A DNA stretch of 63,555 nucleotides, counting the filler, from Salisapilia sapeloensis CBS 127946 (Eukaryota; Protista; Oomycota), in NCBI GenBank assembly GCA_023334545.1. It is 7 parts of 7 records of this genome, joined end to end, with 100 filler letters (N's around TTAATTAATTAA, not from the genome) between each part and the next. Parts side by side here need not be neighbours in the genome. Positions count along the whole stretch, not along the records: positions 21,018 to 39,131 come from JAADVB010000324.1; 6 more parts are not named here. The stretch is one strand, 5' to 3'. The position numbers were made by a program, and so were the translations under genes. Each line of letters opens with the position of its first letter. Position 1 is the first letter of the stretch. The notes under the pieces are model-generated. The model was not told the origin of the DNA and did not search any database. It saw nothing but the letters and a program-made list of their open reading frames with translations. This document shows positions 21,018-39,131 of this stretch, in pieces.

Positions 21018-21516
21018 CGACAATGAGATTGAGACGTTCTGTCGCATCATTATGGAGAACCCGAAGAAGTACATGCGATCCATCTTCCTGAGCGTCTACG
21101 GCAAGATTTGCACTGGCCTTGCTAAACAGCACGCGCACGTTGCCAACATGCGGAAGCTAGAGTACATGATGCAGTATCAATCGAAGCAAGAGGGCGCACT
21201 AAATCGCAAGGTGCCTGACTGCGGCGTGTGTGGAAATAAACTTAAGGGCAGCGCAAAGCCCTGTCGCCTGTGCTGCCAAATGCTGTGCAACCGCTGCCAG
21301 ATCAAGCAAGAGATTTGCTTCATCATGCCGGACAATGAGCTGAAAAAGCCCAAGACCAGTTTCTGCGCTGCATGCATGCATCGTGTGGCGAAGATGGACT
21401 CGTATGCTATCGCTTCCGACCAGATTCGGATTGAGCGTGGCGGCCGTCCGATGGCAAACGCAAATACGTCCGCCTCAGCATCCAGCTCTCATTCCAACTC
21501 TCGTAGCAAAAATTAA
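21018..21516 (+). CDS. 3' part of oomycete START-like + FYVE-like zinc-finger protein
   Basis: Frame open from the gap; HVANMRKLEYMM followed by CGVC...CRLCCQMLCNRC...FCAAC; paralogous to 23731-24930. Confidence 0.75.
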
Positions 21517-23730
21517 CGCCATTTACACTGCTTCATCTGTGCTAAAATAAAACGCGTTTACATATCACTCTTATATGTTTTCGTTGTCACTCCATTCCCA
21601 TGAGCTCTCTCTTTCAAATGGAATAAATATATGGTTCTTATGGCCATGTACTTTTATAGAATGAAGTAGCACACCTCAAGTGAAAGAGGTCGTGCTCAAG
21701 CGCATGCCCATTCAAAATAGATAGCACGATAGCTGGCTTGTGAGCACTAAGCTATACGTAGAGAACCATAAGATTATAGCATTTGTGCTCTACTGCATGC
21801 GTGAAAAATCTGATCAGAGCTGCGCTCACGTCGTAGAAGTCGTTGCAGACAACGCAAATCAAATGATGACTGCGTTTCCAGTGACATCTTTGTGACGCAT
21901 TCACAGCCAGCCACATAAGCTGTCACGATAGTTTGTCGTCAAATCGCGCTCACTACGGCCGTTCACAGCATATCTTTCTGCTTTGCCCGCTTTACTACTT
22001 GCATCAAGGCCCTGATTTTACGATAGCCCTCCGATGGCCGCGGATGAAAAGCTATAGCTTTGCCATTTAAATGTTAAACCGGATTATGACCATTTGGAAG
22101 AGTCTCAGGAATACCTCACGTACAATTGTAAGTTGTGCAGCGACAGGAAGTGATGGTATCGTACCTGGCATAAAAATCGACCTAGCAACGCCTGCTGGAG
22201 AGGAAGCGCGTACGATTCGAGATTGACTTTAAGACCAATCGATAACGATGGGTAGATCACTTTTAAAGATAATGCTGCAATCTACGCATGTAGAGGAGGA
22301 AGCGTCGCGGGTGCTTATCTTAAGCTCAGCCGAACACGATTTATATGCGTTCGCGGAGTTGAAAATTCCAGCTTTATCATACCAACGATCAGGAGATGGT
22401 CGCTACACTTTTGGGTCTACTAGCACTGTGATGAAGAAAGCGTACAGGCACTCACTACAACGGCTCAATTAATTTCGACGACACGTATACCGCAGGAAAG
22501 TCGGTGTTGCCAATGCTAAAAGTCCTCTCGTTGTTTTGGCAGCTACACAAGGTTCCAAAACAACTTTTCACGTATACCTAGAGTGTCTGAATAGTCGACA
22601 TAAAGAGAGCTCTAAACGCAGCATGATATGATTGCGTCCAAAACATGCAATGCGGCATATATGAGATTCCTGGAACCAATTTCGACTTCAGTCCATCACA
22701 AACTGTAGGTTACCAATGTTCATTTTCGACCATTACCTTAAAAGTAGGTATTTATAACTTCATTTCATTCAAGCCTGTACCATACACTTATCTACTGCTT
22801 TAAAAGAATGCACGATTGCTGTTTACATCTAGTACTCGTCGGAAATGAGAGAAATACTCGAGTGATTCTACCTTGCCAGCGCGGATACGTGCCAAGTTTT
22901 CATAGCTGTACTCAGGATGAAATTAATGACCGCAACCGGAGCACCATGCTCAAGGGTCACGCTTGTCCATGGCAGCTTACGTTGCGACCGCGAAGAGATA
23001 TACTTAATGGCCAAAAGAGTCGGAGGAACATTGCTTAGTGACGATCAGCTTACAAAGCCTATCTCACACTAGAATGACTGATACGGTCTTTCATGTCCGA
23101 CGACAGAAACCGCCTGATCGGACAAGAAGCTGACCCAGATCCTTCGAACGCTATCAAAGTTTGACGCATGTCCGACCGACTTTGTAGTGGCTAAAAGTTA
23201 AAACGTCGTCGTGTCAAAGTCTATGCAATGCTTGCACGAAAACGCTAGCGCACCTAGATTGAAAATGAAAATTCGTCCTTATCTTCAGACAAAAGCCAAA
23301 ACCTTGGGTGGGGTTTGGAGCGACCTAGCATCCTCTTACCTCCTAGTGCCCAAGTCCCGTAAGGACATTGAGTCTGCCTACCTCATCCTTTCATCTGATC
23401 CCACTAAACTAGTTATATGTGCTCTCTTCGCTGGTGTATCCCTTTTCAAGCTGCCTTTCAACACGCGCCATGTGGGGCAGACTGTCGAGCTTTGTTCTAG
23501 CGATCAGCCATCATTCGACCCGATCTTATCCGCACCAAGTCTAAAATCGCGGATTAGTGTGGAAGCTCACCTATTCCAGAGAATGACGATCAACAGGATC
23601 CCCCCACGCAATGAACCGAAACTAATGCGAGCGAAGTTTTTCCACAATCGTTCGAATCGTCATAAATCAATTGCGACTAGAGGCAAGAGTTCGTCACTAG
23701 TTCATATATTCAAAAGCCTCTTCTGCCAAA

Positions 23731-24930
23731 ATGCCGCGTCCTCCGACTAAGTTCGTTAGTCCATTTGAGCCGCTCAACTTGGGAGACGCGGACAAGGCCG
23801 AGCTCAAGCGACTTGCAGACGACCTTGTCTTGGAACACATTCACGAGTATCAATCGTACAGGTCAAATAACGGCAAAAATCTCCCTGCGGAACGCTGGCG
23901 ACACGTGCGACAGGAAGACCGGACGAACTTGTACGTCTTACGACGCGACAAGTCGTCAAAGCGCTACGGCGGTGCCTCTGCTGGTACGAAATTTAATGAC
24001 CTCGACCACACACGCAATCTGGTCGACATGCGAGTCGTTGGGACAGTGTCTGGAAACCTTGATGACTGCATGTACGGCAGCATTTCGCCGACGCTCGACG
24101 CGCAGCGCATCATGTCGTCCTATCTCGATGACAACTTTGTCGACGGTGTTATCTTGGCCACACTCGAGGTGCCGACTCCAGAGGAACCGTACCGGTCGCT
24201 CAATATCAAGTATCGCGAAAACGCATATGAAGGACCGATCAAACTACTGGCAAAGAACCAAGACTTTATTTATTTAGAGTCCACAGGCGTTGCGAGACTA
24301 GAGACCGGTGAAGAGTTTGGCTACAAGCTTGCGCACAGCGTCCATTTTCCTCAAACCCACTCGCTCGATTGGACGGTCCGAGGGAACGTCGCGGTTTGCT
24401 TCCTCATGCAGCAAAACGGCGGGAACGATACGGACATTTACAGTCGAGTCGTCCTCGTAACCCCAAACGAGTACATGCGCCACTTTGTCATCCAAGCCTA
24501 CGGCAAGACAAATATCAACATTGCGTCCCAGCAAGCACACACGGGCCAGATGAAAAAGCTGGCGTGGCTCATGCGTCGTCGCAATCAGCAAGGACCGCCT
24601 CCATGTGGAAATGCGTTAAAATGTCATGTTTGCTCCGTGAAGCTCGACTCTCGAGCGAGAGCCTGTCGACTATGTAGCCGGACGCTGTGTACCGCTTGTC
24701 AAATGGTGAAAATCTTGAACGTCATCACTCCCGATGAACGCCTCCATCGCCCCAAATGTGTCTTCTGCGCCTCATGTGTCGATCGAGCGTCCAAGATGAG
24801 CGCCTTTACGGTTGCGGTGGAGGAAATCATGTCCGAGATGTCGACCAACAGTGATCATCGCTTGTCGCTGTCCGACTGTTCCTCACTGACTAGTAGCAGC
24901 GACTGCGCACAAAGATGGATCGTGCCGTAG
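23731..24930 (+). CDS. Oomycete START-like domain + FYVE-like zinc-finger protein
   Basis: VVGTVSGNLDDCMYG, DFIYLESTG, GYKLAHSVHFP, MKKLAWLM, then CHVC...CRLCSRTLCTAC...FCASC; typical expanded oomycete family. Confidence 0.85.
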   Translation: MPRPPTKFVSPFEPLNLGDADKAELKRLADDLVLEHIHEYQSYRSNNGKNLPAERWRHVRQEDRTNLYVLRRDKSSKRYGGASAGTKFNDLDHTRNLVDMRVVGTVSGNLDDCMYGSISPTLDAQRIMSSYLDDNFVDGVILATLEVPTPEEPYRSLNIKYRENAYEGPIKLLAKNQDFIYLESTGVARLETGEEFGYKLAHSVHFPQTHSLDWTVRGNVAVCFLMQQNGGNDTDIYSRVVLVTPNEYMRHFVIQAYGKTNINIASQQAHTGQMKKLAWLMRRRNQQGPPPCGNALKCHVCSVKLDSRARACRLCSRTLCTACQMVKILNVITPDERLHRPKCVFCASCVDRASKMSAFTVAVEEIMSEMSTNSDHRLSLSDCSSLTSSSDCAQRWIVP

Positions 24931-25390
24931 GAGACTGGGCATACTCGGTCGATGTAATAAGTTGTGCCTAGAGTGGCCTAACAAGTGCGTTTGCAGTATA
25001 TAACCATGCATGTTATATTCAATCGAAGAAGCTTCTTTTGTATCTACGAGCTACGAATTACTTACATGTTCAGTTTTGATGCAAGGATAGAAACATAGTC
25101 AGTAGAAAAGTAGCAGGAACTACTTTTGTTTCTTCATCGTATGATAGACGAAGGTTGATGGAAATAGTTCGAATGTACTGCTTAGCGGTATGGCGTGTTG
25201 TCATTTGGAGAAGATACTGGGTGTTCTGGTAGTTGAATTAGAAAAGAGAGTCAAGACAATGGATGCTTGAATTAACGATTGAGTGAACCCAAAATGAATC
25301 CATCGTCAAAGGTGACAGAAAGCGAGCCACAAAAGAAAAGAGAATTCAAACGCTAAAGAATTTCGTTGTTGCTCGTGCAAGGCATGCAGA

Positions 25391-26227
25391 CTAGGCCTTC
25401 TTGAATAGTTGGTGGATGTACTGGACGATCTCGGCTACACCCTTGTTTTCATTGATCTGGGCAAACACCGTCGGTCCGTCGCCGCGCATTCGCTTCGCGT
25501 CTCGACTCATGACATCCAGGTCGGCTCCAACCAAGGGCGCTAGGTCGATCTTGTTGATCACCAGCAAGTCCGCTTGGGTGATGCCTGGTCCACCTTTTCG
25601 GGGGACCTTGTCACCACCAGCAACGTCGATGACGTAGACGATAAAGTCCGCGAGCTCTCGGCTGAAGTTGGCCGCCAAGTTGTCGCCACCGCTCTCGACC
25701 AGAATCAGGTCGGCCTGAAACTCTTGCGTCAGATCTTCACAGGCCTGAAGATTTGCCGAAATGTCCTCTCGGATAGCAGCATGTGGACACCCACCAGTTT
25801 CAATCGCCATGATCCGATCCTCCGATAGCGCTTGGTGCTTGACTAGAAACTCGCCGTCTTCTTTTGTGAAGATGTCGTTGGTAACCGCCACCAACGAGTG
25901 CTCCTTGTCCAGTGCACGACACAGTTGTAGCATGAGAGCAGTCTTCCCGCTCCCGACTGGACCACCGATGCCGACCGTGAAAGCGCGCTGCTTGTAGTCA
26001 CGCGCTTCGTACACTGGCATGTCTCGACCGGCGAACGTGCCGGCGTGGTCCAGATGCTCGTGCGTGTGACCATGGTCTCGAAGTTGCTTTTCCTCGTCTG
26101 GGGTCGGGTCTCGACCACGAGACAACTGGAAACGACGGACTACCTCGTCTCCATCGATAGGAGCACCATGGGCGTGGTGGTGGTGTTCATGCGAATGCTG
26201 ATGGTGGTGGTCGTGCGAATGGTCCAT
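25391..26227 (-). CDS. ureG: Urease accessory GTPase UreG with His-rich N-terminus
   Basis: [18 protein letters not shown] Ni-binding motif, [28 protein letters not shown]; start at [11 protein letters not shown]. Confidence 0.97.
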
Positions 26228-26330
26228 GCTGAGAAAGGGATGCAAATCCTATTATCAGGCGATATAGGGATTTTCGAACAAATTCTGAACAAGTCAGTCG
26301 AACGAACAACACGTGAAAGAAAGATCGAAT

Positions 26331-27119
26331 ATGGCAAAAGTCGTCGGAGTCACGTTCGACCTGGATGACACGCTCTGGAGCGGATCCGCAGTACTTTCGC
26401 ATGCCGAAACGTGTTTCCACAACCACATCGCAGAGCATTTACCGGAAATTGCTGGTCGATTCCAGCCAAGTGACTTTCGACAAACCATGATCGAGCTCGC
26501 TCGAGAGCATCCGGACAAGGCACATAATTATACGTTTCTTAGGAAGTCGGCACTCCAGCAATGCGCCGAGCGTGTCGGAGCCGATAACTTTGCCTTAAAG
26601 AACGGTTTGTCTCTGGAAGCAGAGCTGAAGCGAGCGTACCAAGCTTTCCTTGTCCCACGCAGCAGTCCGACCTTATTTGCAGGCGTAGAAGATCTATTTC
26701 AGAATCTTTCCTCCCATTTAAAGGAAACGGCAGCATCGCAAGGGATTGATCCAACGCACTCTCTGGTCGGACTCGTTACCAACGGAAACTGCGACTTGGC
26801 ACATCTTCCGGCATCGTTTCTAGACCACGTTGCCTTCTTGCTGTCTGCCGAAGATGTCGGAAGGCCTAAACCACATCAAGAGATTTTTGACCAAGCGGCG
26901 AAGAGGTTCCCGTCGGGCATTGATCGGAGTCAGTTGGTGCATGTTGGCGATCACTACGAGTGCGATGTCCTCGGGGCGAAGAAAGCTGGGTTCCGAACGA
27001 TTTGGGTGTATCCGGACGCTGACACGTCGGAGCAAACCGGCGCTTTTGATGCCGCCGACGCGATTGTGGAGGATGTTTCAGAAGTTTTAACGGTAATCGA
27101 GAGATGGAATCGCGCCTAA
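26331..27119 (+). CDS. HAD-superfamily hydrolase (YigB/HDHD4-like)
   Basis: Motif I FDLDDTLW, motif II VTNGN, motif III KPHQEIF, motif IV HVGDHYECDVLGA. Confidence 0.92.
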   Translation: MAKVVGVTFDLDDTLWSGSAVLSHAETCFHNHIAEHLPEIAGRFQPSDFRQTMIELAREHPDKAHNYTFLRKSALQQCAERVGADNFALKNGLSLEAELKRAYQAFLVPRSSPTLFAGVEDLFQNLSSHLKETAASQGIDPTHSLVGLVTNGNCDLAHLPASFLDHVAFLLSAEDVGRPKPHQEIFDQAAKRFPSGIDRSQLVHVGDHYECDVLGAKKAGFRTIWVYPDADTSEQTGAFDAADAIVEDVSEVLTVIERWNRA

Positions 27120-27643
27120 AGAAACGAAACTCGTTACAGCTCGTGTGGCATAAATAGCTTGCTTCAATACAATCTTTACGACTCGCAGCGGATGGGTTTC
27201 GCCTGCAAAAGACAACGGCTCTAGCATACCTTGGCCATGTGTGCGTCTCAGGCGGGATGAGGGCAAGCGACAGGTGCAGGATCCATAAACAACACACACC
27301 TATTCGATCCGAAAGAGTTCAGACATCGATAAAAAACGAAACAAAAATTTGTAAGGATACAAATGCAGCCTAGCATGGGCGTCTTTCGATTTCTTTTCCA
27401 TCGTACGCCTCCTTAATACTATACAAGGTCGGAATGCTAGCGCCGTATCCGCATCAATTGCACGCATGGTGATAAAATGGTCCCGAGGAATTGATAGAAG
27501 TGATAAGTGTCATGATGTCGGCCAGCAGGATTTCCAATTGATCTCCGGCCGACGTCGACGAATGATTCCGTGGTCCATTAAACAGTAGTATATACCGTCG
27601 TCGACGGTTCGAGCAGGTGGTTGCAGCTCCTTTTGCACGCAGC

Positions 27644-28387
27644 TTAGGTACTGCGCTTCCTCCTCAAGATGGACGGAGTCCGAAACGAAAGGTAGGCAGT
27701 GTTCACGGCCTCTTCCGTGCGTCCGACGAACGTGGAGGCCCGTTCGCTGAACTTTTCAAACTCCTCTTTGCTGTAGAAGAGCTCCGATACTTGGTCATCA
27801 GCAATGGGCGGGATTTGGCGCACCATGACGGAGCCAAAGAACGAGACGTGGCGCTCCTCGCCACCCGTGACCGCACGCTTTCTGGTCAGCTGGTCTTGTT
27901 CCTGGATGACCGGATTGCCGACCGAATGGCGCTTCTGCGGACGATCCACTTCGTCCTTGACCGAGACGCGGTCACTGTTGGACCGGCGGTGCACGTCGCC
28001 GTTCATCTGCAGCCGGTAGAAGGCGGTGACCCATTGGGCGAGGTCGCCGCGACTAAAGAGCCGCGCGGTGAACTGCTTGTCTTCTTGGGTGCTGAACTCG
28101 ATACCTTGGTCGACTTTGGCGGTGACCTGGCCGTCGGTAAAGTGGACCATGGCGAGGGCCTTTCGCCTCGACAAGGAGTCTTCCCTCGAATCGAAGAAGC
28201 GCATCTCAAAGTTGCGTAGGACGACGTAGCGCGTGGCCCATGAGATCGAGTTGCGCTTTTTCAGGCGCATGTATCCTTCGCAATGAACGACGCCGGTGCG
28301 CTTGTTTTTGGGCGGATGGGACTCCTTAGCGGCTTTGCATTTTCGGCGCGAGATCTCGGCCGAGTCGATCGTACGATACTTCCTCAT
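27644..28387 (-). CDS. PH-domain protein with C-terminal RVxF-like motif
   Basis: HCEGYMRLKK...WATRYVVL...DLAQWVTAF (PH) and RHVSFFGSVMVRQIP...LFYSKEEF; start placed at the first ATG after the INR at 28541-28556. Confidence 0.8.
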   Translation of the reverse strand: MRKYRTIDSAEISRRKCKAAKESHPPKNKRTGVVHCEGYMRLKKRNSISWATRYVVLRNFEMRFFDSREDSLSRRKALAMVHFTDGQVTAKVDQGIEFSTQEDKQFTARLFSRGDLAQWVTAFYRLQMNGDVHRRSNSDRVSVKDEVDRPQKRHSVGNPVIQEQDQLTRKRAVTGGEERHVSFFGSVMVRQIPPIADDQVSELFYSKEEFEKFSERASTFVGRTEEAVNTAYLSFRTPSILRRKRST

Positions 28388-28540
28388 CAGTGCTGCGAGT
28401 GAAAAATTTAAGTGGGGCACGAGACGATGTGGGCTCGAAAGTATGCGAAAAGCGGTTTCAACAAATTCCGTGGGCGCAGTAGTGTAGGTCGACGGACGAG
28501 AAAAATATCTCCAACACGAGAACCTGTCTGGTAACACGAC

Positions 28541-28556
28541 AAAAGCGAGAATGAGC
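28541..28556 (-). promoter_or_regulatory. Oomycete INR+FPR core promoter
   Basis: GCTCATTCTCGCTTTT on the minus strand matches all 16 positions of the GCTCATTYBNNNWTTY consensus, upstream of the PH gene. Confidence 0.75.
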
Positions 28557-30370
28557 CTTTGGAGATGGGGCTACAACTTGGATAAACACAAGGTGCATCG
28601 TTGGACCTTTGTATAGGGGAAGAAACATTTGTAACTTGTCTGTGATTTTGTATTCAATACGAAAAAGAGGACGCTTATTAAAGTTAAAATGCATATACGA
28701 AGGCTTCCAAGAGCAATCACGTCTGGTCGCTGTACCCAGTCACCTAGTCCTACCGAGTCACCTTGACGCGTTCATTGGCTTAAATTCATCAGCTGACTTT
28801 CGATTTTTACACCTGACTCGGCTTTTAATTCTATATCTGGGCGACGGGAAGGCTTGCACCCATGCTACGGAGGGATCGAGCGGTATGGGTGGGCGCAATG
28901 GGTGCTGGGACTGTGTCCTAAGTGGTGCGTCTGCAGATAGAAAGCAGCAATGAAACAGTATGAGTTAGTAGTCGTTGCCCATCGTCCCTGCTGAGAACGA
29001 GAGACGCGATGCGGCCTTGCATAAACACGCCTAGATAGTGAAACCAAGTTTGATTACAACGGGTTCAAAGAGACGCTTTTGGTCATGGACCTCTCAAGAT
29101 GGTTTCTCGACCGGCATTTATGCTGCGGGTTCAAGCAGGATTCTTGAAATGGAAATTTGTCTAACGTGAACCCTGTCAGAAGATGTGTTCTTGGTATTCA
29201 TATCAGTCAATTCCTCCTTCTTTTTCACTCGACGCTTTCTGAATCATGATTTTATACTCACATCTCACCACAGCTGCTCCTCGGAACCGAGGCTATTGGT
29301 GGATAAAGATGCAGTTCTCTCAGCACTATCGGGATACAAATACAGAAAGCAGGAATTACCTACGGCGAAACCTGTCGGCGACTCATTTCGCATCCTCTTG
29401 CTCTATCTACGATGCAGTGCACGCCAACGGCAAGTGCTTGGCACTGATCAGTTAATCTCGTATAGTGTCACAGCGGCGGATGGATGGATTCGAAAAGTTG
29501 TGGACCAGCACACATCTCACCAAGAATCCAACAACTTCCGAGCCATACCCGCCAACAGAATGCAGCGTTACTACAAACCGACGCTTCTCTTTGTACCATT
29601 GGCTTGGCGTAAAGCGTCGACTACGAAAAAATATCTTGAACGATACCCATGCGCTGGACTATGTCCGCGCTCCACTTGATTTGTAGTGCATTTTACTCAA
29701 GAGCAAGACCATTCTGCCTGAATTCCCTTTCAAAAACTAGACAATCCGTCCAGTCGGTTTCTCTTGGAGTAGAAACACCGCGCCAAAACATGCTCTGCAT
29801 CGTCTGGAGATCTGGCTGAATACAACTTCGTCTGCGCTTCAATGCTCCATGCTCGCTAGCTTTGGTAGATCCAGACGATGCTCAAGAGATTGGTGGTTAC
29901 AGTGTCTGGGTTGAAGGCTACAACATGACACGATCTACAGGACGGAGCGCAGACTATGGCCTGCATAGACAAGCGACCCCGACGCATGGGAAGAAGAAAA
30001 TTTATTCGAAAAAGACAGGGCTGCGCGACTCCTATTCGCCTCCATGGACGATCACCTATCTTTTCTAATAGACAAGTCTAGATCGAGTGTCGGGAACGCT
30101 GCTTGAAGTAGTGAGGAGACATCCATCTTGTAGTCTGCTTTTGAAAAGCGGACAGCCTCCACACTGCTGCTGTCAACTGAATGTGTGCGCCAGACTGAAA
30201 CATACTCTCTTCCAAGCGGTTGAGAACCTTGATGAACCCACGCATTGGACATCAAGTATCAAAAATATACTTTATTGGATTTGTATAGCACATGCCGTAC
30301 TTTGCTACGAAGCATTCGACCTGTCAATCTCGTGATTAACTCTTTCTCTATTTCCATGCAAGACGACAGA

Positions 30371-32233
30371 CTACTCTTTGTGCAGACACAGCCACGGCAG
30401 TTTCTTGCCTCCCTTCCGTCGATGTCCGGACTTGACACCTTGGCTGGGCGTATGATCCGAGTCGGATCGGATGGGGAAGTGCATCGATCCTTCTAGAGAT
30501 CGTTGCGGTGCCCGGCTGAACGGCAGCGGATGGAAGAGCTTGAACGAGTCGATATTGTACCAGTCCGGTCGACTCTCTCGACTCTGATTCGCCTTCGGAG
30601 GACGGTCGACGTGCCTCAGGTAGACGTTCACAATGGCTTCGTCAATCCAACGCTCGATCAAGTCGGCTGTGAAGGCCTTTTCCTGCGACGACATGACACT
30701 GCTGTGCAGGAGGGCGTCGACGTGGTCTCGCCCGAGGTCATTCGTCACCACTCGACCTTTGGGTCCGAGCAGCGCACTCGCGTACAGCCAGTACAGATCG
30801 TCCGAAGCTTGTCCTGTGTCGCAACTATAGACGAGGTTGTTCTCCTGCCACTTGGCGACGAGCTTCCGGTCTTCGTCTGTGCGTTGTCGAAAGTGGACTT
30901 TACCTTCCTTTCGCTCCTTTTTCTTCTTCTTCGTCCGGAGATTGATGAGGAACGAGTCGTGGAGGTACTGTTGTGGCAGAGTGATGGTGACGGCATGCCC
31001 TCTCTCCAGCAAATCGTTGGCAATGTGCTCAATGTGGTCGAGACGCAGGTCGCCCATGTCAAAGTTCTGGTTTAGGTAGGCCAAGTTCGGACCGTCGAGG
31101 ATATAGTGGAGCTTCTTGTCATCAGCCGAAGCTTCCAGAGCCTCCTGTTTCTGCAGCAGCCATGCTTTAAATGGTTCGAGGACCTCAATTGCAGGTCGTC
31201 CATCTTGGTACCGCATGCCTCGATTCTCGAGAGCAGATATGAGTGTGGACCGCTCTGTAGACGTCAGTGGTAGTTTGTCGAGCTTCGTGCCACAGCATTT
31301 GCACGCAGGATGCATCTTGTGGTCGGATGGAATGATGCTGCCTTTAAATCCACAAGAATGGAACTGCTGCTGGAGTTTCTCAGCGTTGGCTGACGAGATC
31401 TCTTGGCAGGCGATACGAAGGTCGAGCAACAACTCATTCAGGTCGTTGGCTTTGCAGTCCAGAGCGTTCGGATGGTGGATCGAGTAGTGCTGCTCACAGG
31501 CGATGATGAGATCGACCAGGGTGTCTTCCATCGCAGTGCTCCACTCGATCCCGTGGTGCTTTAGTTGGTGCCACCGATCGATGACTCGAGGAAAGGCGAG
31601 TGGATCCGTCGGCACTTGTTGGCATTCGTACTCTAGAATGGTACGGACGGTGCGAAAGTGTAGGTTGTCCGTCGGTCCAAGCTTTTGCAGCTCTCGGATG
31701 ATGCTCCAAGCTGCGTCGATCTGCCCGTTGCGGACGTAGATGTTGATAACTGCAGCGAACGTAGCTTCATTCAGCGACTCATTTAGTTGGAAATTGGCTT
31801 TTGCGTCTTCGTGAAAAAGATTCTGGTGAAAGTAGTCTAGTACATCCTTTTGGAGACTGTCATCGATTGCTATTGTCGGCGGAGACGACTTGCCTCGTCC
31901 AGTATCGTGATGATGATGATGACTGTGGGATGAATCGTTCATTGCGTTGGCACAGTGAAAGTAGAACGTGTCTACGGCTTTGCGGTGCAAATTGCCATGC
32001 AGTCCGTTTGTTTCAACGTCCTTTTGGAGCATTTGAAAGACTTGGCGAAGCGACTTGCCTTCCTTCACAAGAGCCGTGTGGACGTTCCAATAAGGCCTTG
32101 GGATGGTGTCCTTGACGTACCATCGCACTGGATGGTAGCGAAAGTCTTTTAGAATGGACTTGGATATATTCCTCCATGAAGTTGCCTCGATAGACCTTTT
32201 ACGCAGCGTCAGTGGGACTCGTAGACGCAGCAT
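30371..32233 (-). CDS. PRORP: Protein-only RNase P (PPR + Zn + NYN domain), probably mitochondrial
   Basis: PPR-like repeats (EATFAAVINIYVRNGQIDAAWSII), CKCC zinc site, ILDGPN, SDDLYWLYAS, VVTNDLGRDH, C-terminal H...WLC; Arg/Leu/Ser-rich N-terminus from ATG 32233. Confidence 0.88.
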   Translation of the reverse strand: MLRLRVPLTLRKRSIEATSWRNISKSILKDFRYHPVRWYVKDTIPRPYWNVHTALVKEGKSLRQVFQMLQKDVETNGLHGNLHRKAVDTFYFHCANAMNDSSHSHHHHHDTGRGKSSPPTIAIDDSLQKDVLDYFHQNLFHEDAKANFQLNESLNEATFAAVINIYVRNGQIDAAWSIIRELQKLGPTDNLHFRTVRTILEYECQQVPTDPLAFPRVIDRWHQLKHHGIEWSTAMEDTLVDLIIACEQHYSIHHPNALDCKANDLNELLLDLRIACQEISSANAEKLQQQFHSCGFKGSIIPSDHKMHPACKCCGTKLDKLPLTSTERSTLISALENRGMRYQDGRPAIEVLEPFKAWLLQKQEALEASADDKKLHYILDGPNLAYLNQNFDMGDLRLDHIEHIANDLLERGHAVTITLPQQYLHDSFLINLRTKKKKKERKEGKVHFRQRTDEDRKLVAKWQENNLVYSCDTGQASDDLYWLYASALLGPKGRVVTNDLGRDHVDALLHSSVMSSQEKAFTADLIERWIDEAIVNVYLRHVDRPPKANQSRESRPDWYNIDSFKLFHPLPFSRAPQRSLEGSMHFPIRSDSDHTPSQGVKSGHRRKGGKKLPWLCLHKE

Positions 32234-32404
32234 GTCAGTACCAGCCACCAGTGGCGAGGTGTCTTCAAGTGAATAAGCTCAATCAAGTACGACGAGGACT
32301 GTTCTCGATCAAGTTCGATATGGACATTTGGTTCCGCTGGTACGCTACAATCGATACATGACATGGGAACTTGGAAGAGATAAAAGGGAGGTGTTTAAAA
32401 ATGT

Positions 32405-33644
32405 TCACTGATCTAGAATGTAGTCAAAATCGATGTACTTGGCGTAGTGCTCGCCACAGTTGAGCACCTTTTGACGATCGGTAGGACTGAATTTGGCTGA
32501 TGTCCAGGTTAGTAACTTGGCAAACTCTGGATATAGACATAGGCAAGGTACCTGTGAAGCTAGAGATTTTATCCATCGCATCAGACGTCGTCATGGGCGC
32601 GTACAGCACTGGTACTTTGGTGTTCGCGATTATGTCCATAATGTACTCTTGTGGCTGGTCGCCTGGTGGGACGCCCGTCAAAATGAGTCCTCCTCGGAAC
32701 TCTTGGCCGGACTTTTGCTCGTAGTTTTGGGCGTGGGACAAGAGACCGAGGATGATATCATTACGAGACGCATGGGTGACGAAGACTGTGTTATTGTAGG
32801 CAGCAGAGGACAGGTCGACCAGGAACCGCCGTAATCCGGACGTCACGAGCGCTGTCTTTTCAAACTGTTTGAAACGCCGATCTCGGCCTGAAAGCAACTT
32901 GACATCAAAGAGGGACTCAAAGTCCAGCATGCTGTGGTTTGCTAGCGACGGTAGGTTCGGCACGACGCCGATGAGAGGCAGACCTAGCTGCTTGAGAGCA
33001 CGAGGGAAATACTCTTGGAGCATCTCCATCTTTTCTGCATGGACTTTGTTCAAGATGACGCCACGCACTTTGACGTTGTAGTGTTTGCACAAGTAGTAGT
33101 TGAGCACCAAGTCATCAAAAGCAGAGCCCAAACCGCCGTTGGCGATGAGCACCATGTCAATGTTGAGCTCCGAGGCAACGCGTGCGTTACTGACGTCAAC
33201 GATGGAGCCGACGCCAGTGTGCCCTGTGCCTTCCACGATAGTGTACTATTATTCGGTTGTTAGCGCTCCAAGTTGCATCGCAAGCGGTGTATGTGATACC
33301 TCATTGGCGGCCGTGATGGTGTTGAATGACGTGTGGATCTTTTGAAGTTGCTCTTCAAGGGTAATGTTGCCGTCCAAAAAGGCGCGAGTATACCCAGAAG
33401 GGATGACGACGGGTGACATGTCCTTGTAGTTGCAATGGTTCAAGTCGAAGACCTCTTTCGCGACCGCGACATCCTTATCGACGGATCGCGTACCGTCCTC
33501 GACGAGCACGCTCTGCTGACCGACGGGCTTGAGGAAACCAAGACGATCGATCCTGCTGTTCAACCCGTGCAGCAAGCCGATGCAGGTGCTAGTCTTGCCA
33601 ACGTGCTGCCTCGTGGCAGCTACAAATACCGCTCGCTTCTTCAT
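32405..33644 (-). CDS. Stand-alone BioD-like (AAA_26) + DRTGG protein, i.e. phosphotransacetylase N-terminal module without catalytic domain, 3 exons
   Basis: FVAATRQHVGKT, GFLKPVGQQ, IVEGTGHTGVGS, GGLGSAFDDL, GVILNK, THASRNDII, GGLILTG; ends YIDFDYILDQ-stop at 32405-32407 after a 3' intron. Confidence 0.88.
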
Positions 33645-33805
33645 CCCCACGGGCGGAGCTTTTCGTTCGTTTTTGTCGTGAAACGCGCGATCTTCAACCT
33701 AAGTCTTCATGAATCCTATAAACAAAGCATACATTATTTAAGTGGTTTTGGAATTCATTCCATCCGTTTTCAAGGTCTACTCGAGCAGCGCGGCCTGTGA
33801 TCGAA

Positions 33806-35659
33806 ATGATCCAACCGGAAACTTCTCGTCTCCGCCGTCGCTCCTTTTACGAAGATACAGAGTCCGATTCAGAGACTACACCCATGAACACTGATACGGG
33901 CACATTCATTTCCATCCCGGACAATAGCGGGAACAACTCGACAGATCAAGAGTCCAACCCTCGTGCGCTCATCGTCTGGTGGCGGCTGCTTAAAACGTAC
34001 GTTCGCCGTCAATGGCAACTTTTCCCGAGACATCTGAGGACATCCTGGAGGTCATTTTGTCCATACCTGGATCTCGCGTGGGGTCTAGTAAGCTTTCGAC
34101 GATACCGAACGATCAAACATTGGGGCTACGCGACCCACTGGCTTTCGATGACGACGCTTTGTCTATTATTTATGCAATTGATCCTATTCTGGTACTTTCA
34201 GGAAGAGTTCTTTGACCTACAAGTTCGAGAGTGCGTATTCCAGCCAGGATTGCTCATCGGCTTCCCGAGTGCGCATGTTGGCGTCGACCCGACCATGTCG
34301 CATGAGCTGTACAAGGTAAAGAACGCAGCGTCATCACCTGTGGACCGCGTACTGGCGCGTCGCTTCGATCGGCAACATGTCGTGGCTTCAACGCTCAACC
34401 CCATGTCTGAATGGACGTGTGTGTCTCTAGTGGCAGAAGAGGAAGTCAAAGCCACTGAATTGTCCCGCTTGCTGCCTCGAAGTCGAATAGTTGACCCAGT
34501 CACTGCAGAGTCTTTATCAACGAGACTCGTATGGAATGTGGGTACCTGGACACGCACAAATCCTCTGATTGTATCTGCCGCAAGTGTTCCGTGGACGTTA
34601 TCAAAACAGGAGATCTTCCAAGTAGGTTTCCCTGACATCGTGATGGCGAATTCCGAGTTTCAGTTGCGGCAGTTACAAAAGCTACGTACCCACTTGACGG
34701 AGATGGGGGAAGAAACGCTGCGAGATCACGGGGGTGAGGACGAGACGAGTGTTGCTGATGCGAACAAGGAAACCAAAGCGTCGTCAAAAGTCGCTGACTT
34801 TGCAGTGTACCTGCTCCGATCGATGAGGAAGGACATTTATCAGCGGAAAATTCGAAAGCAGTGGGATGCTGTGCTACATGTTGCTGTTCTGTCGGAAACG
34901 GAGATCGAGAGCGATCCACATGATCCCGATCCGCAGTTCACGAAAGAGTTGCTGACGTTGTGGCTACAGCACCCGACATGGCCTACTTTGTACGTCCGCT
35001 TCGAGCGGTCGTTGCCGTTGTGCAATTCTCTACTCAAGTGGACACAAGCATTCCATAACGAAAAGGCACAGTCGGCCGATGTTCAAGCGGACCCATCTCG
35101 TCCCCAGCCGACGGCCCTACCTCGAAACATCGACTTCACATGTGATACACAGGCCAACTCCGAGGACGCTGTCAATCTGCTGAAGAATCAGATCGGCATC
35201 CATGCATTTATGGCTCCGAAAGCCAACGCGTTAGAGTATCAGGACCGAGTGCTGGACACCTTGTCTGCCGGAGCGTTCGCCATCACGTATGCGTCTCCAG
35301 TCATGCAAGAGTGGGTGCCTAGTCGAGACGGTATTCTTGCCGGGACCTTCCACGTCGTGGACGCGACGGAGGACAATCTGCTGGGCGGCGTTGATGTTCA
35401 CATGAGCTCCAGCGACGTGGAGAAAGCATTGCAAGTAGCACTCGAGCTGGATCCGGTGCATCTCGTCACTGCCGGTCGGAACGCCCGTGCGCAGTATCTA
35501 AAGCTGAGGACACACTTCATGTCGGCCATGGCTGCGTTCCACTTGGGCATTTGTGATCATGAAGAAACCGTTCAGACAGATTTGGCGGAGAAGACAACGG
35601 TCGGACACCGGAGAGAGCGGACGGTCGACATGGCTCCGCTGCGAGCGTTCTTGTATTAA
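33806..35659 (+). CDS. Membrane-anchored protein, possibly a divergent GT-B glycosyltransferase
   Basis: TM WLSMTTLCLLFMQLILFWYF; C-terminal IGIHAFMAPKANALEYQDRVLDTLSAGAFAITY weakly recalls a GT-B donor-binding region. The ORF is solid, the function weak. Confidence 0.55.
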   Translation: MIQPETSRLRRRSFYEDTESDSETTPMNTDTGTFISIPDNSGNNSTDQESNPRALIVWWRLLKTYVRRQWQLFPRHLRTSWRSFCPYLDLAWGLVSFRRYRTIKHWGYATHWLSMTTLCLLFMQLILFWYFQEEFFDLQVRECVFQPGLLIGFPSAHVGVDPTMSHELYKVKNAASSPVDRVLARRFDRQHVVASTLNPMSEWTCVSLVAEEEVKATELSRLLPRSRIVDPVTAESLSTRLVWNVGTWTRTNPLIVSAASVPWTLSKQEIFQVGFPDIVMANSEFQLRQLQKLRTHLTEMGEETLRDHGGEDETSVADANKETKASSKVADFAVYLLRSMRKDIYQRKIRKQWDAVLHVAVLSETEIESDPHDPDPQFTKELLTLWLQHPTWPTLYVRFERSLPLCNSLLKWTQAFHNEKAQSADVQADPSRPQPTALPRNIDFTCDTQANSEDAVNLLKNQIGIHAFMAPKANALEYQDRVLDTLSAGAFAITYASPVMQEWVPSRDGILAGTFHVVDATEDNLLGGVDVHMSSSDVEKALQVALELDPVHLVTAGRNARAQYLKLRTHFMSAMAAFHLGICDHEETVQTDLAEKTTVGHRRERTVDMAPLRAFLY

Positions 35660-35727
35660 GTTCGATTGTTGTGTTTTTCATCAGCTCCCTCGTCCCAGTT
35701 GAGAAAAGTTACGGGAGATAAAAAAGC

Positions 35728-36069
35728 ATGAAGTTCTCTCTACGTTTCCCAAAGGTGCCGGTGGTGCCGGTGGATGCAGCATCAAAGACTGGGGGCAAGT
35801 GGATCGACTACTTGAGAACGAAGGATCCGGAGATTGTTCCGCTTCTGGCATGCGATGCCATTGGCGTAGGACTAATTGGCTCGACGGGTGTCTATCAACT
35901 CTGTGCGAATCCGGAAGTGAACTTGCGACGTCGTCGTCGAGAGACGCCTACAGTCAATCGACTGGAAAAGGCCGAGGGAGAGGCGTACATGGCCCATCGT
36001 CGTGGCATGGCGACTTTGGTGCCGAATCCGATTAACATGCATCCGTCGTTTGAGCACACTCGTAGTTAA
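35728..36069 (+). CDS. NDUFA4/B12D (MLRQ-like) small mitochondrial membrane protein
   Basis: DPEIVPLLACDAIGVGLIG...LCANPEVNL pattern of the B12D family; 113 aa. Confidence 0.7.
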   Translation: MKFSLRFPKVPVVPVDAASKTGGKWIDYLRTKDPEIVPLLACDAIGVGLIGSTGVYQLCANPEVNLRRRRRETPTVNRLEKAEGEAYMAHRRGMATLVPNPINMHPSFEHTRS

Positions 36070-36743
36070 AGATGGAAATGAACGTTTAAGTTGGATGTAT
36101 GTCGTGTCTACCTTGCAAATTCTGCATCTTTTGGTCGTTACTTGGCGCGAAGGAGATGGATTGGCGGTACTCAAAACATCGTCGAAGAAACTTGATTGAG
36201 AAGGATCTATATGCTGCACTTGGTATATGTATGAGCCGATTGACAGATCATGATGCTTTCCTTCCAACTATACTTGCTTATGATATCGTCTGCCAAGGTT
36301 CGGTGAAAGCACTCTTGGCGAAGCCGAAATCGATCATGAAGTGATGCAGCTGCTATAAAGTACACTGCTTGTCCTTATACTTGTACAATACAATATCTTA
36401 TTTGAGTATTTGCGTGTAAGAGCAGTCAGGAGGGTGAATCTACATTTGGTTTCGTATGTCCTCCTACTTATCTGGCCCAAATGTCCTAAAGTAAATGGAA
36501 TTCAGGCACAATCCCAGGATCTTGCGTAAGTATGAATCAAGCGAGGATCTTTATGATTGTGGATTGTAAGGAATCCGTGGGTAGAAGGTTGAATTTCCGT
36601 CTTTCGGACCAAGGATTGCCCATTTGATTTCTACAATTGGTTGATACATTTATACGCGTGGTGAGCATCCTTGCATCAAAAGCCCATTCAGAGATTTATA
36701 CTTGACCCCAAAGTCCAGCGCGGAAACTGTTACAATTCGTGAA

Positions 36744-38835
36744 ATGAGCCAAAAGCTGCTGAGTCTACAGCTCTTGGCGTTGCTTGCTTGTCTCTTCGCC
36801 CAGGTGACATTCGGGATGCACGAAGCAAAAGAGAGTAGTCAAGGAGAGGAGTCAATGGACTGGGAAACGTTAAGGAAGAAGCAATCGGAAATGGATCCTG
36901 CAGACGTATTGAAAGTATGGGAAAAGCTTATGGAAGAAAAGAGTTACGAGCAACCTGAGGGTGTGGCGTACGTTCATGTGCTTGGTGTTTTAGAGATAAG
37001 TATGGTTCATAACGATGTCTACGTTTAATATAGCTCGCTGGATCGTAGGGCACTGCCAACGCTCAACGCCGATGACTACAAGCACGTCACTACCATGTAC
37101 ATCGTTGTACGATCCGTTTAAATCGTGAAGGACTAACTTCCTTGGCGATTGATATGAATAGAATGTCACGGAACGTTCCGTTGGAGAATACGACTGGAGT
37201 GTTTCATGGTCTCAAGGAGCTGTAAGCTGCCTCCTTTGTATAAACACATAGATTCAACATGACTGCTCATTCGTCTACAGCACCTTGGACCAAGCAAAAG
37301 TTAAGACGATTGATGGCGACAACTTTCCGGACCTCACCAAGCTGTATCTATCATGTACAAAGAATGCAAACTAAGACTGACGAATATTGCACGGGTAGAT
37401 CCATGAAGCACGGTGAGCTGGAAAAGATAAACGGCACCTGGAATTCTCTTGAGGAGATGTATGATGACTGCTATAGGCTTTATATGGAAACTTGACCTGA
37501 TATTTGCTTTGCCGCAGAGACGTTATTTGGAATCAAATCGAGAACGTCGACGTGAAAATGCCAAAGCTAAGAGAAGCGTATGCTGTATGATGATAGAGGA
37601 GAAAGACATGATTTGATTTTGCGTTAATAGGAAATTTGGATTCAATAAGATCCAAGTATTTCGAGGTACCTTTCCAGAGCTGAAGGAACTGTACGCACGA
37701 GTCTATGTATCGAATGCCAGATACTTTACTTACGGGGTATTTGGATATTCTAGGTCTGCTCCCAACAACAGCATTTTCAGCGACGAAGATAAATTCAAGC
37801 TACGCGATTGCAAATGTCTGGAAAAAGTGTACATACACTGCTGTTTCTACCGTAGCAGTACCTCTTCTCACGATGATGTCTTTTGGATAGTGACCTGAAC
37901 TACAACAGTATGACAGAGATAGGTGATTATCACGCCGCCAGCATGGAAAGTGTCAAAGACTTGTACGTCACTACAATACCAGTAGAACGGTCAACTAGCT
38001 CATGATATGTCAATGTTATTGTGTGTAGAAGGGTTGCTCACAACAAACTGAAACGTTGGAAAGGGATGTGGCCGAACCTTGTCGATGTGTACGTATCTAG
38101 CTTCAACAGCGGCTATGAGTCCATTAACAAGACTGACTTGTGTTTAAACAGAGACATGAGCTGGAACGACCTGAAAAAAATGGATCCGTATATCCCGAAG
38201 ATCCAGAAGATGTATGTATTTTACTTTAGCACATACGCGTTGCTTTCGAAGTGTTGTTGAGTCTAAAGTCCGTGTAGTTCCCTGGCGCATAATTATCTTG
38301 TTGGCTATCGCTTTTTCCCTTGGCCGAGGAAGGATACCAACAAGCTCGTGCTGAACGAACTCTATCACCTGTACGTCTTTGAATGCATCGCACGCTTCAT
38401 ATTTTGACATAACTATGCTCGTAGGGATCTGTCTTTCAATGGGGATAGATACCTTACCGCGGAGGATGAAGAGTTTTACCAAAAACTGTTCATTAAAGAT
38501 ACCGATAAGTTGAAATACCTGTACAGTATTTGAAAAGATTCGCACATTTGGGTGCGCTGTCGGGTACTAGATGCTAATTTATACATATTCTCCACTAGAA
38601 ATCTCGAGGATACGCCTTCCAGAGACGGCGATGCTAACGTTGTTGTGAGCGAATTGAAGAACCAACATTCGTACATCTCCATGACGGGATGGTATTCATT
38701 GTACTCATTTTAGCTATTTTTCCATTAACAATTTATATGCAACTTTCTACATGTAGTATTCTTCTAGATGGCGAGGACCACTGCAAAGATAAAGCCAAAT
38801 TTTTGTTCCATGGCGATGTTCATGTAACAAAATAG
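36744..38835 (+). CDS. Secreted leucine-rich-repeat protein, 15 exons, 405 aa
   Basis: Exons 36744-36967, 37034-37096, 37162-37221, 37281-37343, 37399-37458, 37518-37577, 37631-37690, 37754-37828, 37891-37962, 38029-38088, 38152-38211, 38278-38370, 38425-38520, 38599-38691, 38757-38835 give a stop-free 1218-nt CDS; signal peptide MSQKLLSLQLLALLACLFAQVTFG; repeats such as LRVAHNKLKRWKGMWPNLVDV. First and last junctions least certain. Confidence 0.88.
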
Positions 38836-39131
38836 ATTTCCTGGACTTAGACATTTGAATGAGTGCATAAGACACTGCTGCTCTTTTGCTCTACCACGCG
38901 TAGATTCAACGCTCGTTGCCTTCTTAACTTTCCAAACTTTACTCGATCAATTTCCATTCTACTCGATCGTCTTCCCGACTTTGCTCTTTCGCATCTTGGT
39001 GTCAGTTTTATCCTGAACTAGAGTTTGTCTTCTCCAGGTTTCCAAACACGTTTCTTATTGTTAGTTCATAGGAAGTAGAAATCTGAAGGAAAACATCTAG
39101 CTAGATTTGTCCAGGCACCGGGGTTTCCAGC

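Follow-up and report, generated by a model that had tools for sequence, protein, structure and literature searches.

The stretch of Salisapilia sapeloensis CBS 127946 DNA analyzed here (63,555 nt in all, hereafter the window) includes an 18-kb piece derived from JAADVB010000324.1 (positions 21,018-39,131; assembly GCA_023334545.1), near the end of which lies a gene encoding leucine-rich repeats (LRRs). A search for GT..AG introns using the exon sizes proposed in an initial annotation gave one consistent model, a single open frame of 405 codons on the plus strand at positions 36744-38835 (ATG at 36744, stop codon at 38833-38835), divided into 15 exons by 14 introns and encoding a product of 405 aa. 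All 14 introns are of the GT-AG type, 53-78 nt in length and in phase 2, with donors resembling GTA(C/T)(G/A). The internal exons (exons 2-14) measure 63, 60, 63, 60, 60, 60, 75, 72, 60, 60, 93, 96 and 93 nt, respectively; all 13 are thus multiples of 3 in the range of 60-96 nt, and all are symmetric (2-2). The recomputed model was identical to the exon sizes, intron lengths, splice sites and uniform phase claimed in the initial annotation, and the remark that the ORF track misses the gene was also correct, as the mechanical ORF list contains just 36702-37028 at this locus, which is exon 1 plus read-through.

All features of the gene are on the plus strand. A 5′ UTR delimited by RNA contigs (36631-36743) precedes exon 1 (36744-36967, 224 nt; junction found in RNA), which starts with Met1 and a signal-peptide-like segment (residues 1-24, 36744-36815) and also encodes an acidic N-terminal region without repeats. 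Thereafter each exon encodes a single LRR unit: exon 2 (37034-37096, 63 nt), the first and a degenerate unit; exon 3 (37162-37221, 60 nt), with an NTT sequon; exon 4 (37281-37343, 63 nt); exon 5 (37399-37458, 60 nt), with an NGT sequon; exon 6 (37518-37577, 60 nt); exon 7 (37631-37690, 60 nt); exon 8 (37754-37828, 75 nt), with an NNS sequon and a CKC pair; exon 9 (37891-37962, 72 nt); exon 10 (38029-38088, 60 nt); exon 11 (38152-38211, 60 nt); exon 12 (38278-38370, 93 nt), a long unit of 31 aa; exon 13 (38425-38520, 96 nt), a long unit of 32 aa; and exon 14 (38599-38691, 93 nt), the final and again degenerate unit. Gene model, RNA and repeat register agree for all of these exons, and exons 6, 7, 9, 10, 11 and 12 were also recovered by the motif scan. 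Exon 15 (38757-38835, 79 nt including the stop codon) encodes a C-terminal tail and is coding in the spliced minor form only; the 3′ UTR (38836-38938) is defined by RNA contigs ending at 38923-38938. The intervening introns 1-5 occupy 36968-37033, 37097-37161, 37222-37280, 37344-37398 and 37459-37517, introns 6-10 occupy 37578-37630, 37691-37753, 37829-37890, 37963-38028 and 38089-38151, and introns 11-14 occupy 38212-38277, 38371-38424, 38521-38598 and 38692-38756.

Assembled transcripts of the locus were present in all four RNA runs of this organism (X1-X4) as contigs of 1252-1594 nt with no mismatches to the window, and junctions 1-13 occurred at exactly the predicted coordinates in contigs of every run. 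Transcripts began at 36631 in three runs, while the X1 contig extended ~66 nt upstream of 36600. The ATG at 36744 is the first of the transcript, with none between 36631 and 36744. No LRR exon was seen to be skipped or repeated in the contigs of the four runs, which are assemblies from which rare isoforms are dropped. Splicing of intron 14 (65 nt) was different. In X1-X3 the sole long contig was unbroken from 38599 to about 38936 and retained the intron, and only X4 had a spliced contig (depth 10.2), alongside an unspliced piece (depth 20.1). Introns 1-13 are therefore constitutive and intron 14 is alternative, so that the proposed 14-intron model held in the RNA for its first 13 introns and needed amendment at the last, which is mostly retained. 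Among the 14 introns, intron 14 combines the weakest donor (GTATTC) with the lowest GC (0.26). Its retention adds W-Y-S-L-Y-S-F followed by a stop codon at 38711-38713 and replaces the last 26 residues, giving a product of 386 aa, and as retention predominates, this form lacking the Cys-bearing tail is probably the commoner product. Introns 7 (37691-37753) and 10 (38089-38151) are both 63 nt in length without an in-frame stop, and their retention would add 21 residues in frame; no such transcript was found among the RNA contigs. Low-depth RNA contigs (depth ~4) also covered the spacer between the LRR gene and the upstream B12D gene (36093-36525), and may belong to a longer 5′ UTR, to an LRR transcript that starts further upstream or to background transcription.

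When the protein was cut at the exon junctions, the units aligned to the consensus L-x-x-L|x-L-x-x-N-x-I/L-x-x-I-x-G-x-x-P-x, with the intron inside the codon of the fourth residue. Junctions 2-13 (12 of 14) split the codon of this hydrophobic residue (L4) in LxxL|xLxxN, which bears out the claim that splicing falls at a constant LRR position from exon 2 to exon 14; junction 1 (EGVA|SLD) is a weak match and junction 14 (MTGC|ILL) is not LRR-like. The residues encoded by the split codons of junctions 1-14 are A, I, L, L, I, A, L, V, L, V, I, L, L and C. At 13 of the 14 junctions a hydrophobic residue is already determined by the two bases of the upstream exon, irrespective of the third base, and the array would consequently tolerate gain or loss of an exon. 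A strict LRR motif occurred six times in the protein compared with 0.12 times expected from shuffled sequences (maximum of 2 in 2000 shuffles), and a looser motif had eight occurrences outside the signal peptide. When the 13 exon-encoded units were combined into a profile and searched against the PDB, all 38 sequences matched with an E of 10 or less were LRR proteins, namely repebodies, VLRs, chondroadherin, ALS, LRRC15/23/72, decorin, TLRs, APL1 and internalin B; with a profile of 19 positions, the best E-value (0.0033) was modest. Tandem units with the pattern LxxLxLxxN/CxL, together with this similarity to known LRR structures, place the protein in the LRR superfamily, as the initial annotation had it, and suggest a probable LRR solenoid fold. 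Pfam returned no family even at an E of 10 or less for the 20-65 aa pieces submitted, which were single exons or read-through pieces of introns 7 and 10. A search of the ESM Atlas with exon 12 (30 aa) returned transposase fragments with scores of 0.78 or less, which we regard as noise.

The hydropathy profile of the whole 405-aa product showed a single strongly hydrophobic region, at residues 4-26. It contains a 15-residue hydrophobic core (residues 5-19) followed by T-F-G, which fits the -3/-1 rule and provides a plausible cleavage site, so that the N-terminus is signal-peptide-like as judged from hydropathy and the -3/-1 rule. Beyond residue 26 the profile has no further hydrophobic window above 1.6, and hence no TM-like stretch; there is no kinase either, the last unit being followed by only 26 residues. 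In these respects the predicted signal peptide and the absence of TM and kinase described in the initial annotation agree with our analysis. The protein has three N-x-S/T sequons and, in its mature part, four Cys (216, 218, 380 and 389), of which C380, encoded by the split codon at junction 14, and C389 belong to the tail. A signal peptide (by hydropathy) and a single LRR domain with nothing else constitute the layout of secreted LRR-only (sLRR) proteins, and the product is probably secreted. A regular-expression scan downstream of the signal peptide revealed no occurrence of RxLR(-dEER), LxLFLAK (CRN) or CHxC, and an identity as an effector of the RxLR/CRN type was rejected on this basis.

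The LRR gene was also compared with its neighbors. Its GC3 (0.56) is within the range of theirs (0.54-0.72), and the lower overall GC of the gene is due to its introns and amino-acid composition rather than to foreign origin. Between 33150 and 36100, the neighboring stretch covered by RNA, the GT1-like and B12D genes are intronless, and the sole intron is at 33246-33299 in the DRTGG gene (minus strand, 54 nt; phase 0 by frame arithmetic on the ORFs). Fourteen introns in 2.1 kb are thus exceptional locally, where neighbors have none or one. A 2316-nt RNA contig (33756-36071) spans the GT1-like (33806-35656) and B12D-like (35728-36066) ORFs, which are 72 nt apart, and may reflect overlapping UTRs, a read-through or bicistronic transcript, or an assembly merge. 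The intronless 617-aa ORF at 33806-35656 (plus strand) had no Pfam match, and its nearest ESM Atlas clusters were from Oomycota, comprising oomycete glycosyltransferase family 1 proteins, and giant-virus proteins. It had a single sequence homolog among 5.8 billion proteins ([Pythium] brassicae, 36% identity over 83% of the query) and is a fast-evolving, oomycete-restricted GT1-like protein.

Five neighboring genes (HAD hydrolase, PRORP, AAA_26/DRTGG, GT1-like and B12D) are syntenic with an 18-kb contig of [Pythium] brassicae (SMMQ01003400.1). This microsynteny spans positions 26313-36069 of the window with local rearrangement, the DRTGG gene having about 70% amino-acid identity with its counterpart, and makes an oomycete origin of the locus well supported, in agreement with the initial annotation. 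SMMQ01003400.1 also has a PPR gene and a CAP-Gly/LRR/ubiquitin-like (TBCE-like) gene with no counterpart in the 18-kb piece. In [Pythium] brassicae it is the DRTGG gene, not an LRR gene, that comes after B12D, which puts the LRR gene at a synteny break. The final ~180 nt of the piece (38956-39131) form a terminal repeat at 3-4x depth, represented by extra DNA contigs with a word depth of 97-156 vs. 41.9 for the unique contig that ends at 39020. An 8.2-kb RNA contig enters at 39020-39131, and together with the extra-depth contigs it indicates that a transcribed repeated element or gene adjoins the LRR gene. Searches with the B12D-like (113 aa), GT1-like (617 aa) and PRORP (620 aa) ORFs found no annotated copy of the locus on record.

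The layout of one repeat per phase-2 exon was thus confirmed, but it is less rare than the initial annotation implied, since phase-2 LRR exon arrays have been published for rice, Tetrahymena and the LH receptor. The group-5 LRR-kinases of rice (ERECTA type) have one LRR per exon and a phase-2 intron that splits the first Leu of xxLxLxx (PMC3050792). The LRR gene shares with them short exons that are multiples of 3 and the same intron position and phase; however, the plant genes have 72-nt exons corresponding to the 24-aa plant-specific LRR, compared with 60-96 nt and units of 20-21 or 31-32 aa here, and encode a TM segment and a kinase, neither of which is present in the LRR-only product of S. 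sapeloensis. Tetrahymena possesses tens of thousands of LRR exons of exactly 90 bp with phase-2 introns and a 2+1 junction codon (PMC6564038). Tandem LRR exons, classical phase-2 introns and the 2+1 junction residue are common to both organisms, and the last three repeat exons here (93, 96 and 93 nt) are near the 90 bp of Tetrahymena. Nevertheless, the ciliate has thousands of such genes, with young copies that share nucleotide identity (PMC6564038), whereas we found one locus with mixed exon sizes and saturated synonymous sites. The LH receptor is cited in PMC11378527 as having an LRR ectodomain whose introns are all in phase 2, and as far as it is described there it resembles the present gene in that and in exon size; glycoprotein-hormone receptors are GPCR fusions with animal-type 24-aa units, and on that description are related to the LRR gene by nothing beyond the LRR fold.

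Closer in taxonomy are the ROCO genes of brown algae, in which one LRR is encoded per 72-bp exon and shuffling and many splice variants have been reported (PMC11378527; PMC3341825). The resemblance consists in a stramenopile host, one LRR per exon and symmetric exons, and a role in recognition has been proposed for the algal proteins. On the other hand, LRR-ROCO genes encode ROC-COR GTPase domains and have exons of 72 bp that have clearly been shuffled recently and give rise to many splice variants; none of these features applies here: the 405-aa product, consisting of signal segment, linker, LRR units and 26-aa tail, has no room for ROC-COR, and neither near-identical exons (by exon identities) nor transcripts with multiple exon combinations (in contigs of the four RNA runs) were found. 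According to the algal study, exon nucleotides 3-71 encode whole codons (PMC11378527); the intron phase of brown algae may thus be classical phase 1, which would make the gene described here closer to those of plants and Tetrahymena than to those of brown algae. In layout, the protein can be likened to the secreted LRR-only proteins of fungi (ZtLRR and relatives) and one from Phytophthora infestans, a group for which suppression of PAMP-triggered responses has been reported (bioRxiv 10.1101/2025.08.22.671746). These likewise consist of a signal peptide and a lone LRR domain in a filamentous osmotroph; the paper makes no mention of introns or exons.

The initial annotation regarded the locus as a diversifiable cassette system. 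In its strongest form this means that duplication, deletion, swapping or alternative splicing of LRR exons goes on today and varies a secreted recognition or effector surface, as has been proposed for brown-algal LRR-ROCO genes. As every internal exon has a length divisible by 3 and 2-2 phase, any of them could be skipped or duplicated in frame; moreover, the hydrophobic junction residue would be kept at 13 of 14 junctions whichever exon came next, the last intron is alternatively spliced, and the gene lies at a synteny break relative to [Pythium] brassicae and next to the 3-4x repeat at the contig end. Sequence comparison between exons, which had been suggested as a means of detecting shuffling, nonetheless pointed the other way. 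Gapped DNA identity of exon vs. exon was 0.50, equal to the value for shuffled sequences (0.50). Among the six 60-nt exons, ungapped identity was 0.40 compared with a null of 0.26 ± 0.014, and by codon position it was 0.37, 0.53 and 0.29 for positions 1, 2 and 3, respectively (null 0.26), placing position 3 at the random level. By this measure the exon units are homologous, and identity confined to the first two positions implies that the units were duplicated long ago and have undergone no recent duplication or conversion. The RNA was equally uniform, as all 13 repeat exons occurred in one form in each of the four assemblies and variation was limited to whether intron 14 was retained. In the organism's own DNA run (23 Mb, all contigs) no second copy was found at 80% identity or more, the source contig being the only match, and tblastn with the spliced protein found no paralog in the 18-kb piece and no ortholog on the [Pythium] brassicae contig. 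With the same 80% cut-off, the DNA runs of two other organisms, which are too distant, gave no match to the LRR gene and only fragments of 35-85 nt of a neighboring gene. A search of 1.84 billion representative proteins with exon 1 (74 aa) found no ortholog; its two weak matches (E of 5e-4 and 8e-4) were to proteins of 1481 and 873 aa, each in 4-5 separate stretches, and were judged non-specific. Taken as a whole, these data do not uphold the diversifiable cassette, and we think it unlikely that the array is being actively rearranged.

The gene might instead descend from a plant-type, host-like LRR ectodomain acquired by horizontal transfer, with the phase-2, exon-per-repeat structure of its donor intact, and now serve as a receptor mimic. 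This would account for the intron position and phase shared with rice LRR-kinases (PMC3050792) and for the absence of the gene from the syntenic [Pythium] brassicae locus, and mimicry of plant receptors has been suggested for LRR-only proteins secreted by fungi and by one Phytophthora (bioRxiv 10.1101/2025.08.22.671746). This scenario is hard to reconcile with the native GC3, with introns of 53-78 nt similar to the 54-nt intron of the neighboring gene, or with units of 20-21 aa instead of the 24-aa plant-specific type encoded by 72-nt exons. The best PDB-profile matches, furthermore, were "typical" LRRs of animals, and none of the 38 were plant proteins. Given its native GC3, intron size and repeat type, we rejected a transferred gene as highly improbable. 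Somewhat less improbable, though still unlikely, is that the product is not secreted at all and acts as an intracellular or membrane-associated LRR adaptor, its N-terminus being a signal anchor or the result of a mis-chosen start. The commoner transcript form without the Cys-bearing tail and a mature part with four Cys only would be in keeping with such a protein, but 36744 is the first ATG of the transcript, the hydrophobic core and T-F-G fit the -3/-1 rule, and the three sequons and the lack of any other hydrophobic window above 1.6 also speak against it.

We therefore favor, with a probability of roughly 0.65, an expressed oomycete gene for a probable secreted LRR-only protein whose array arose by old tandem exon duplication or was inherited. 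Its product comprises a signal-peptide-like segment, an acidic linker and about 12-13 short LRR units, mostly of 20-21 aa with the last three of 31-32 aa, to which the minor splice form adds a short tail with two Cys. Each unit corresponds to one symmetric (2-2) exon, with the intron after the second base of the L4 codon in LxxLxLxxN. The array most likely originated by repeated tandem duplication of a single unit of LRR exon plus phase-2 intron, or alternatively was inherited from an LRR gene that was already exon-per-repeat. It may have been kept because loss of a single intron gives no advantage and short exons splice efficiently. At present, splicing is ordinary and constitutive except at the last intron, whose weak splicing leads to retention, either regulated or leaky, and so to a swap of the C-terminal tail. 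The most likely function is that of an extracellular binding surface for a protein or glycan ligand, such as a host, cell-wall or self-surface partner.

A further, speculative possibility, to which we assign little weight, is that the locus is one member of a diverged family (below 80% identity) of secreted LRR genes built from cassettes, in an oomycete whose genes otherwise have few introns, with phase-2 exons being gained, lost or skipped. If this were true, such changes over evolutionary or regulatory time would vary the extracellular binding surface, alternative splicing of intron 14 would switch a disulfide-capped tail on and off, and the family would be an oomycete counterpart of the LRR exon arrays of brown algae and Tetrahymena.

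On present evidence, the LRR gene does not reveal a new diversity-generating mechanism. Full-text searches of the literature returned no description of an oomycete LRR gene built with one repeat per exon, and the gene is a further example of a known architecture in a lineage where this is apparently undescribed. Genes of this type will be missed in surveys of oomycete secretomes by gene finders that are based on ORFs or expect few introns. The widespread design of one LRR per phase-2 exon occurs in an oomycete as well, with the intron at the same residue and in the same phase as in plant LRR-kinases. This bears on the question of whether the intron position is ancient in eukaryotic LRR genes or has been reached repeatedly via exon duplication.
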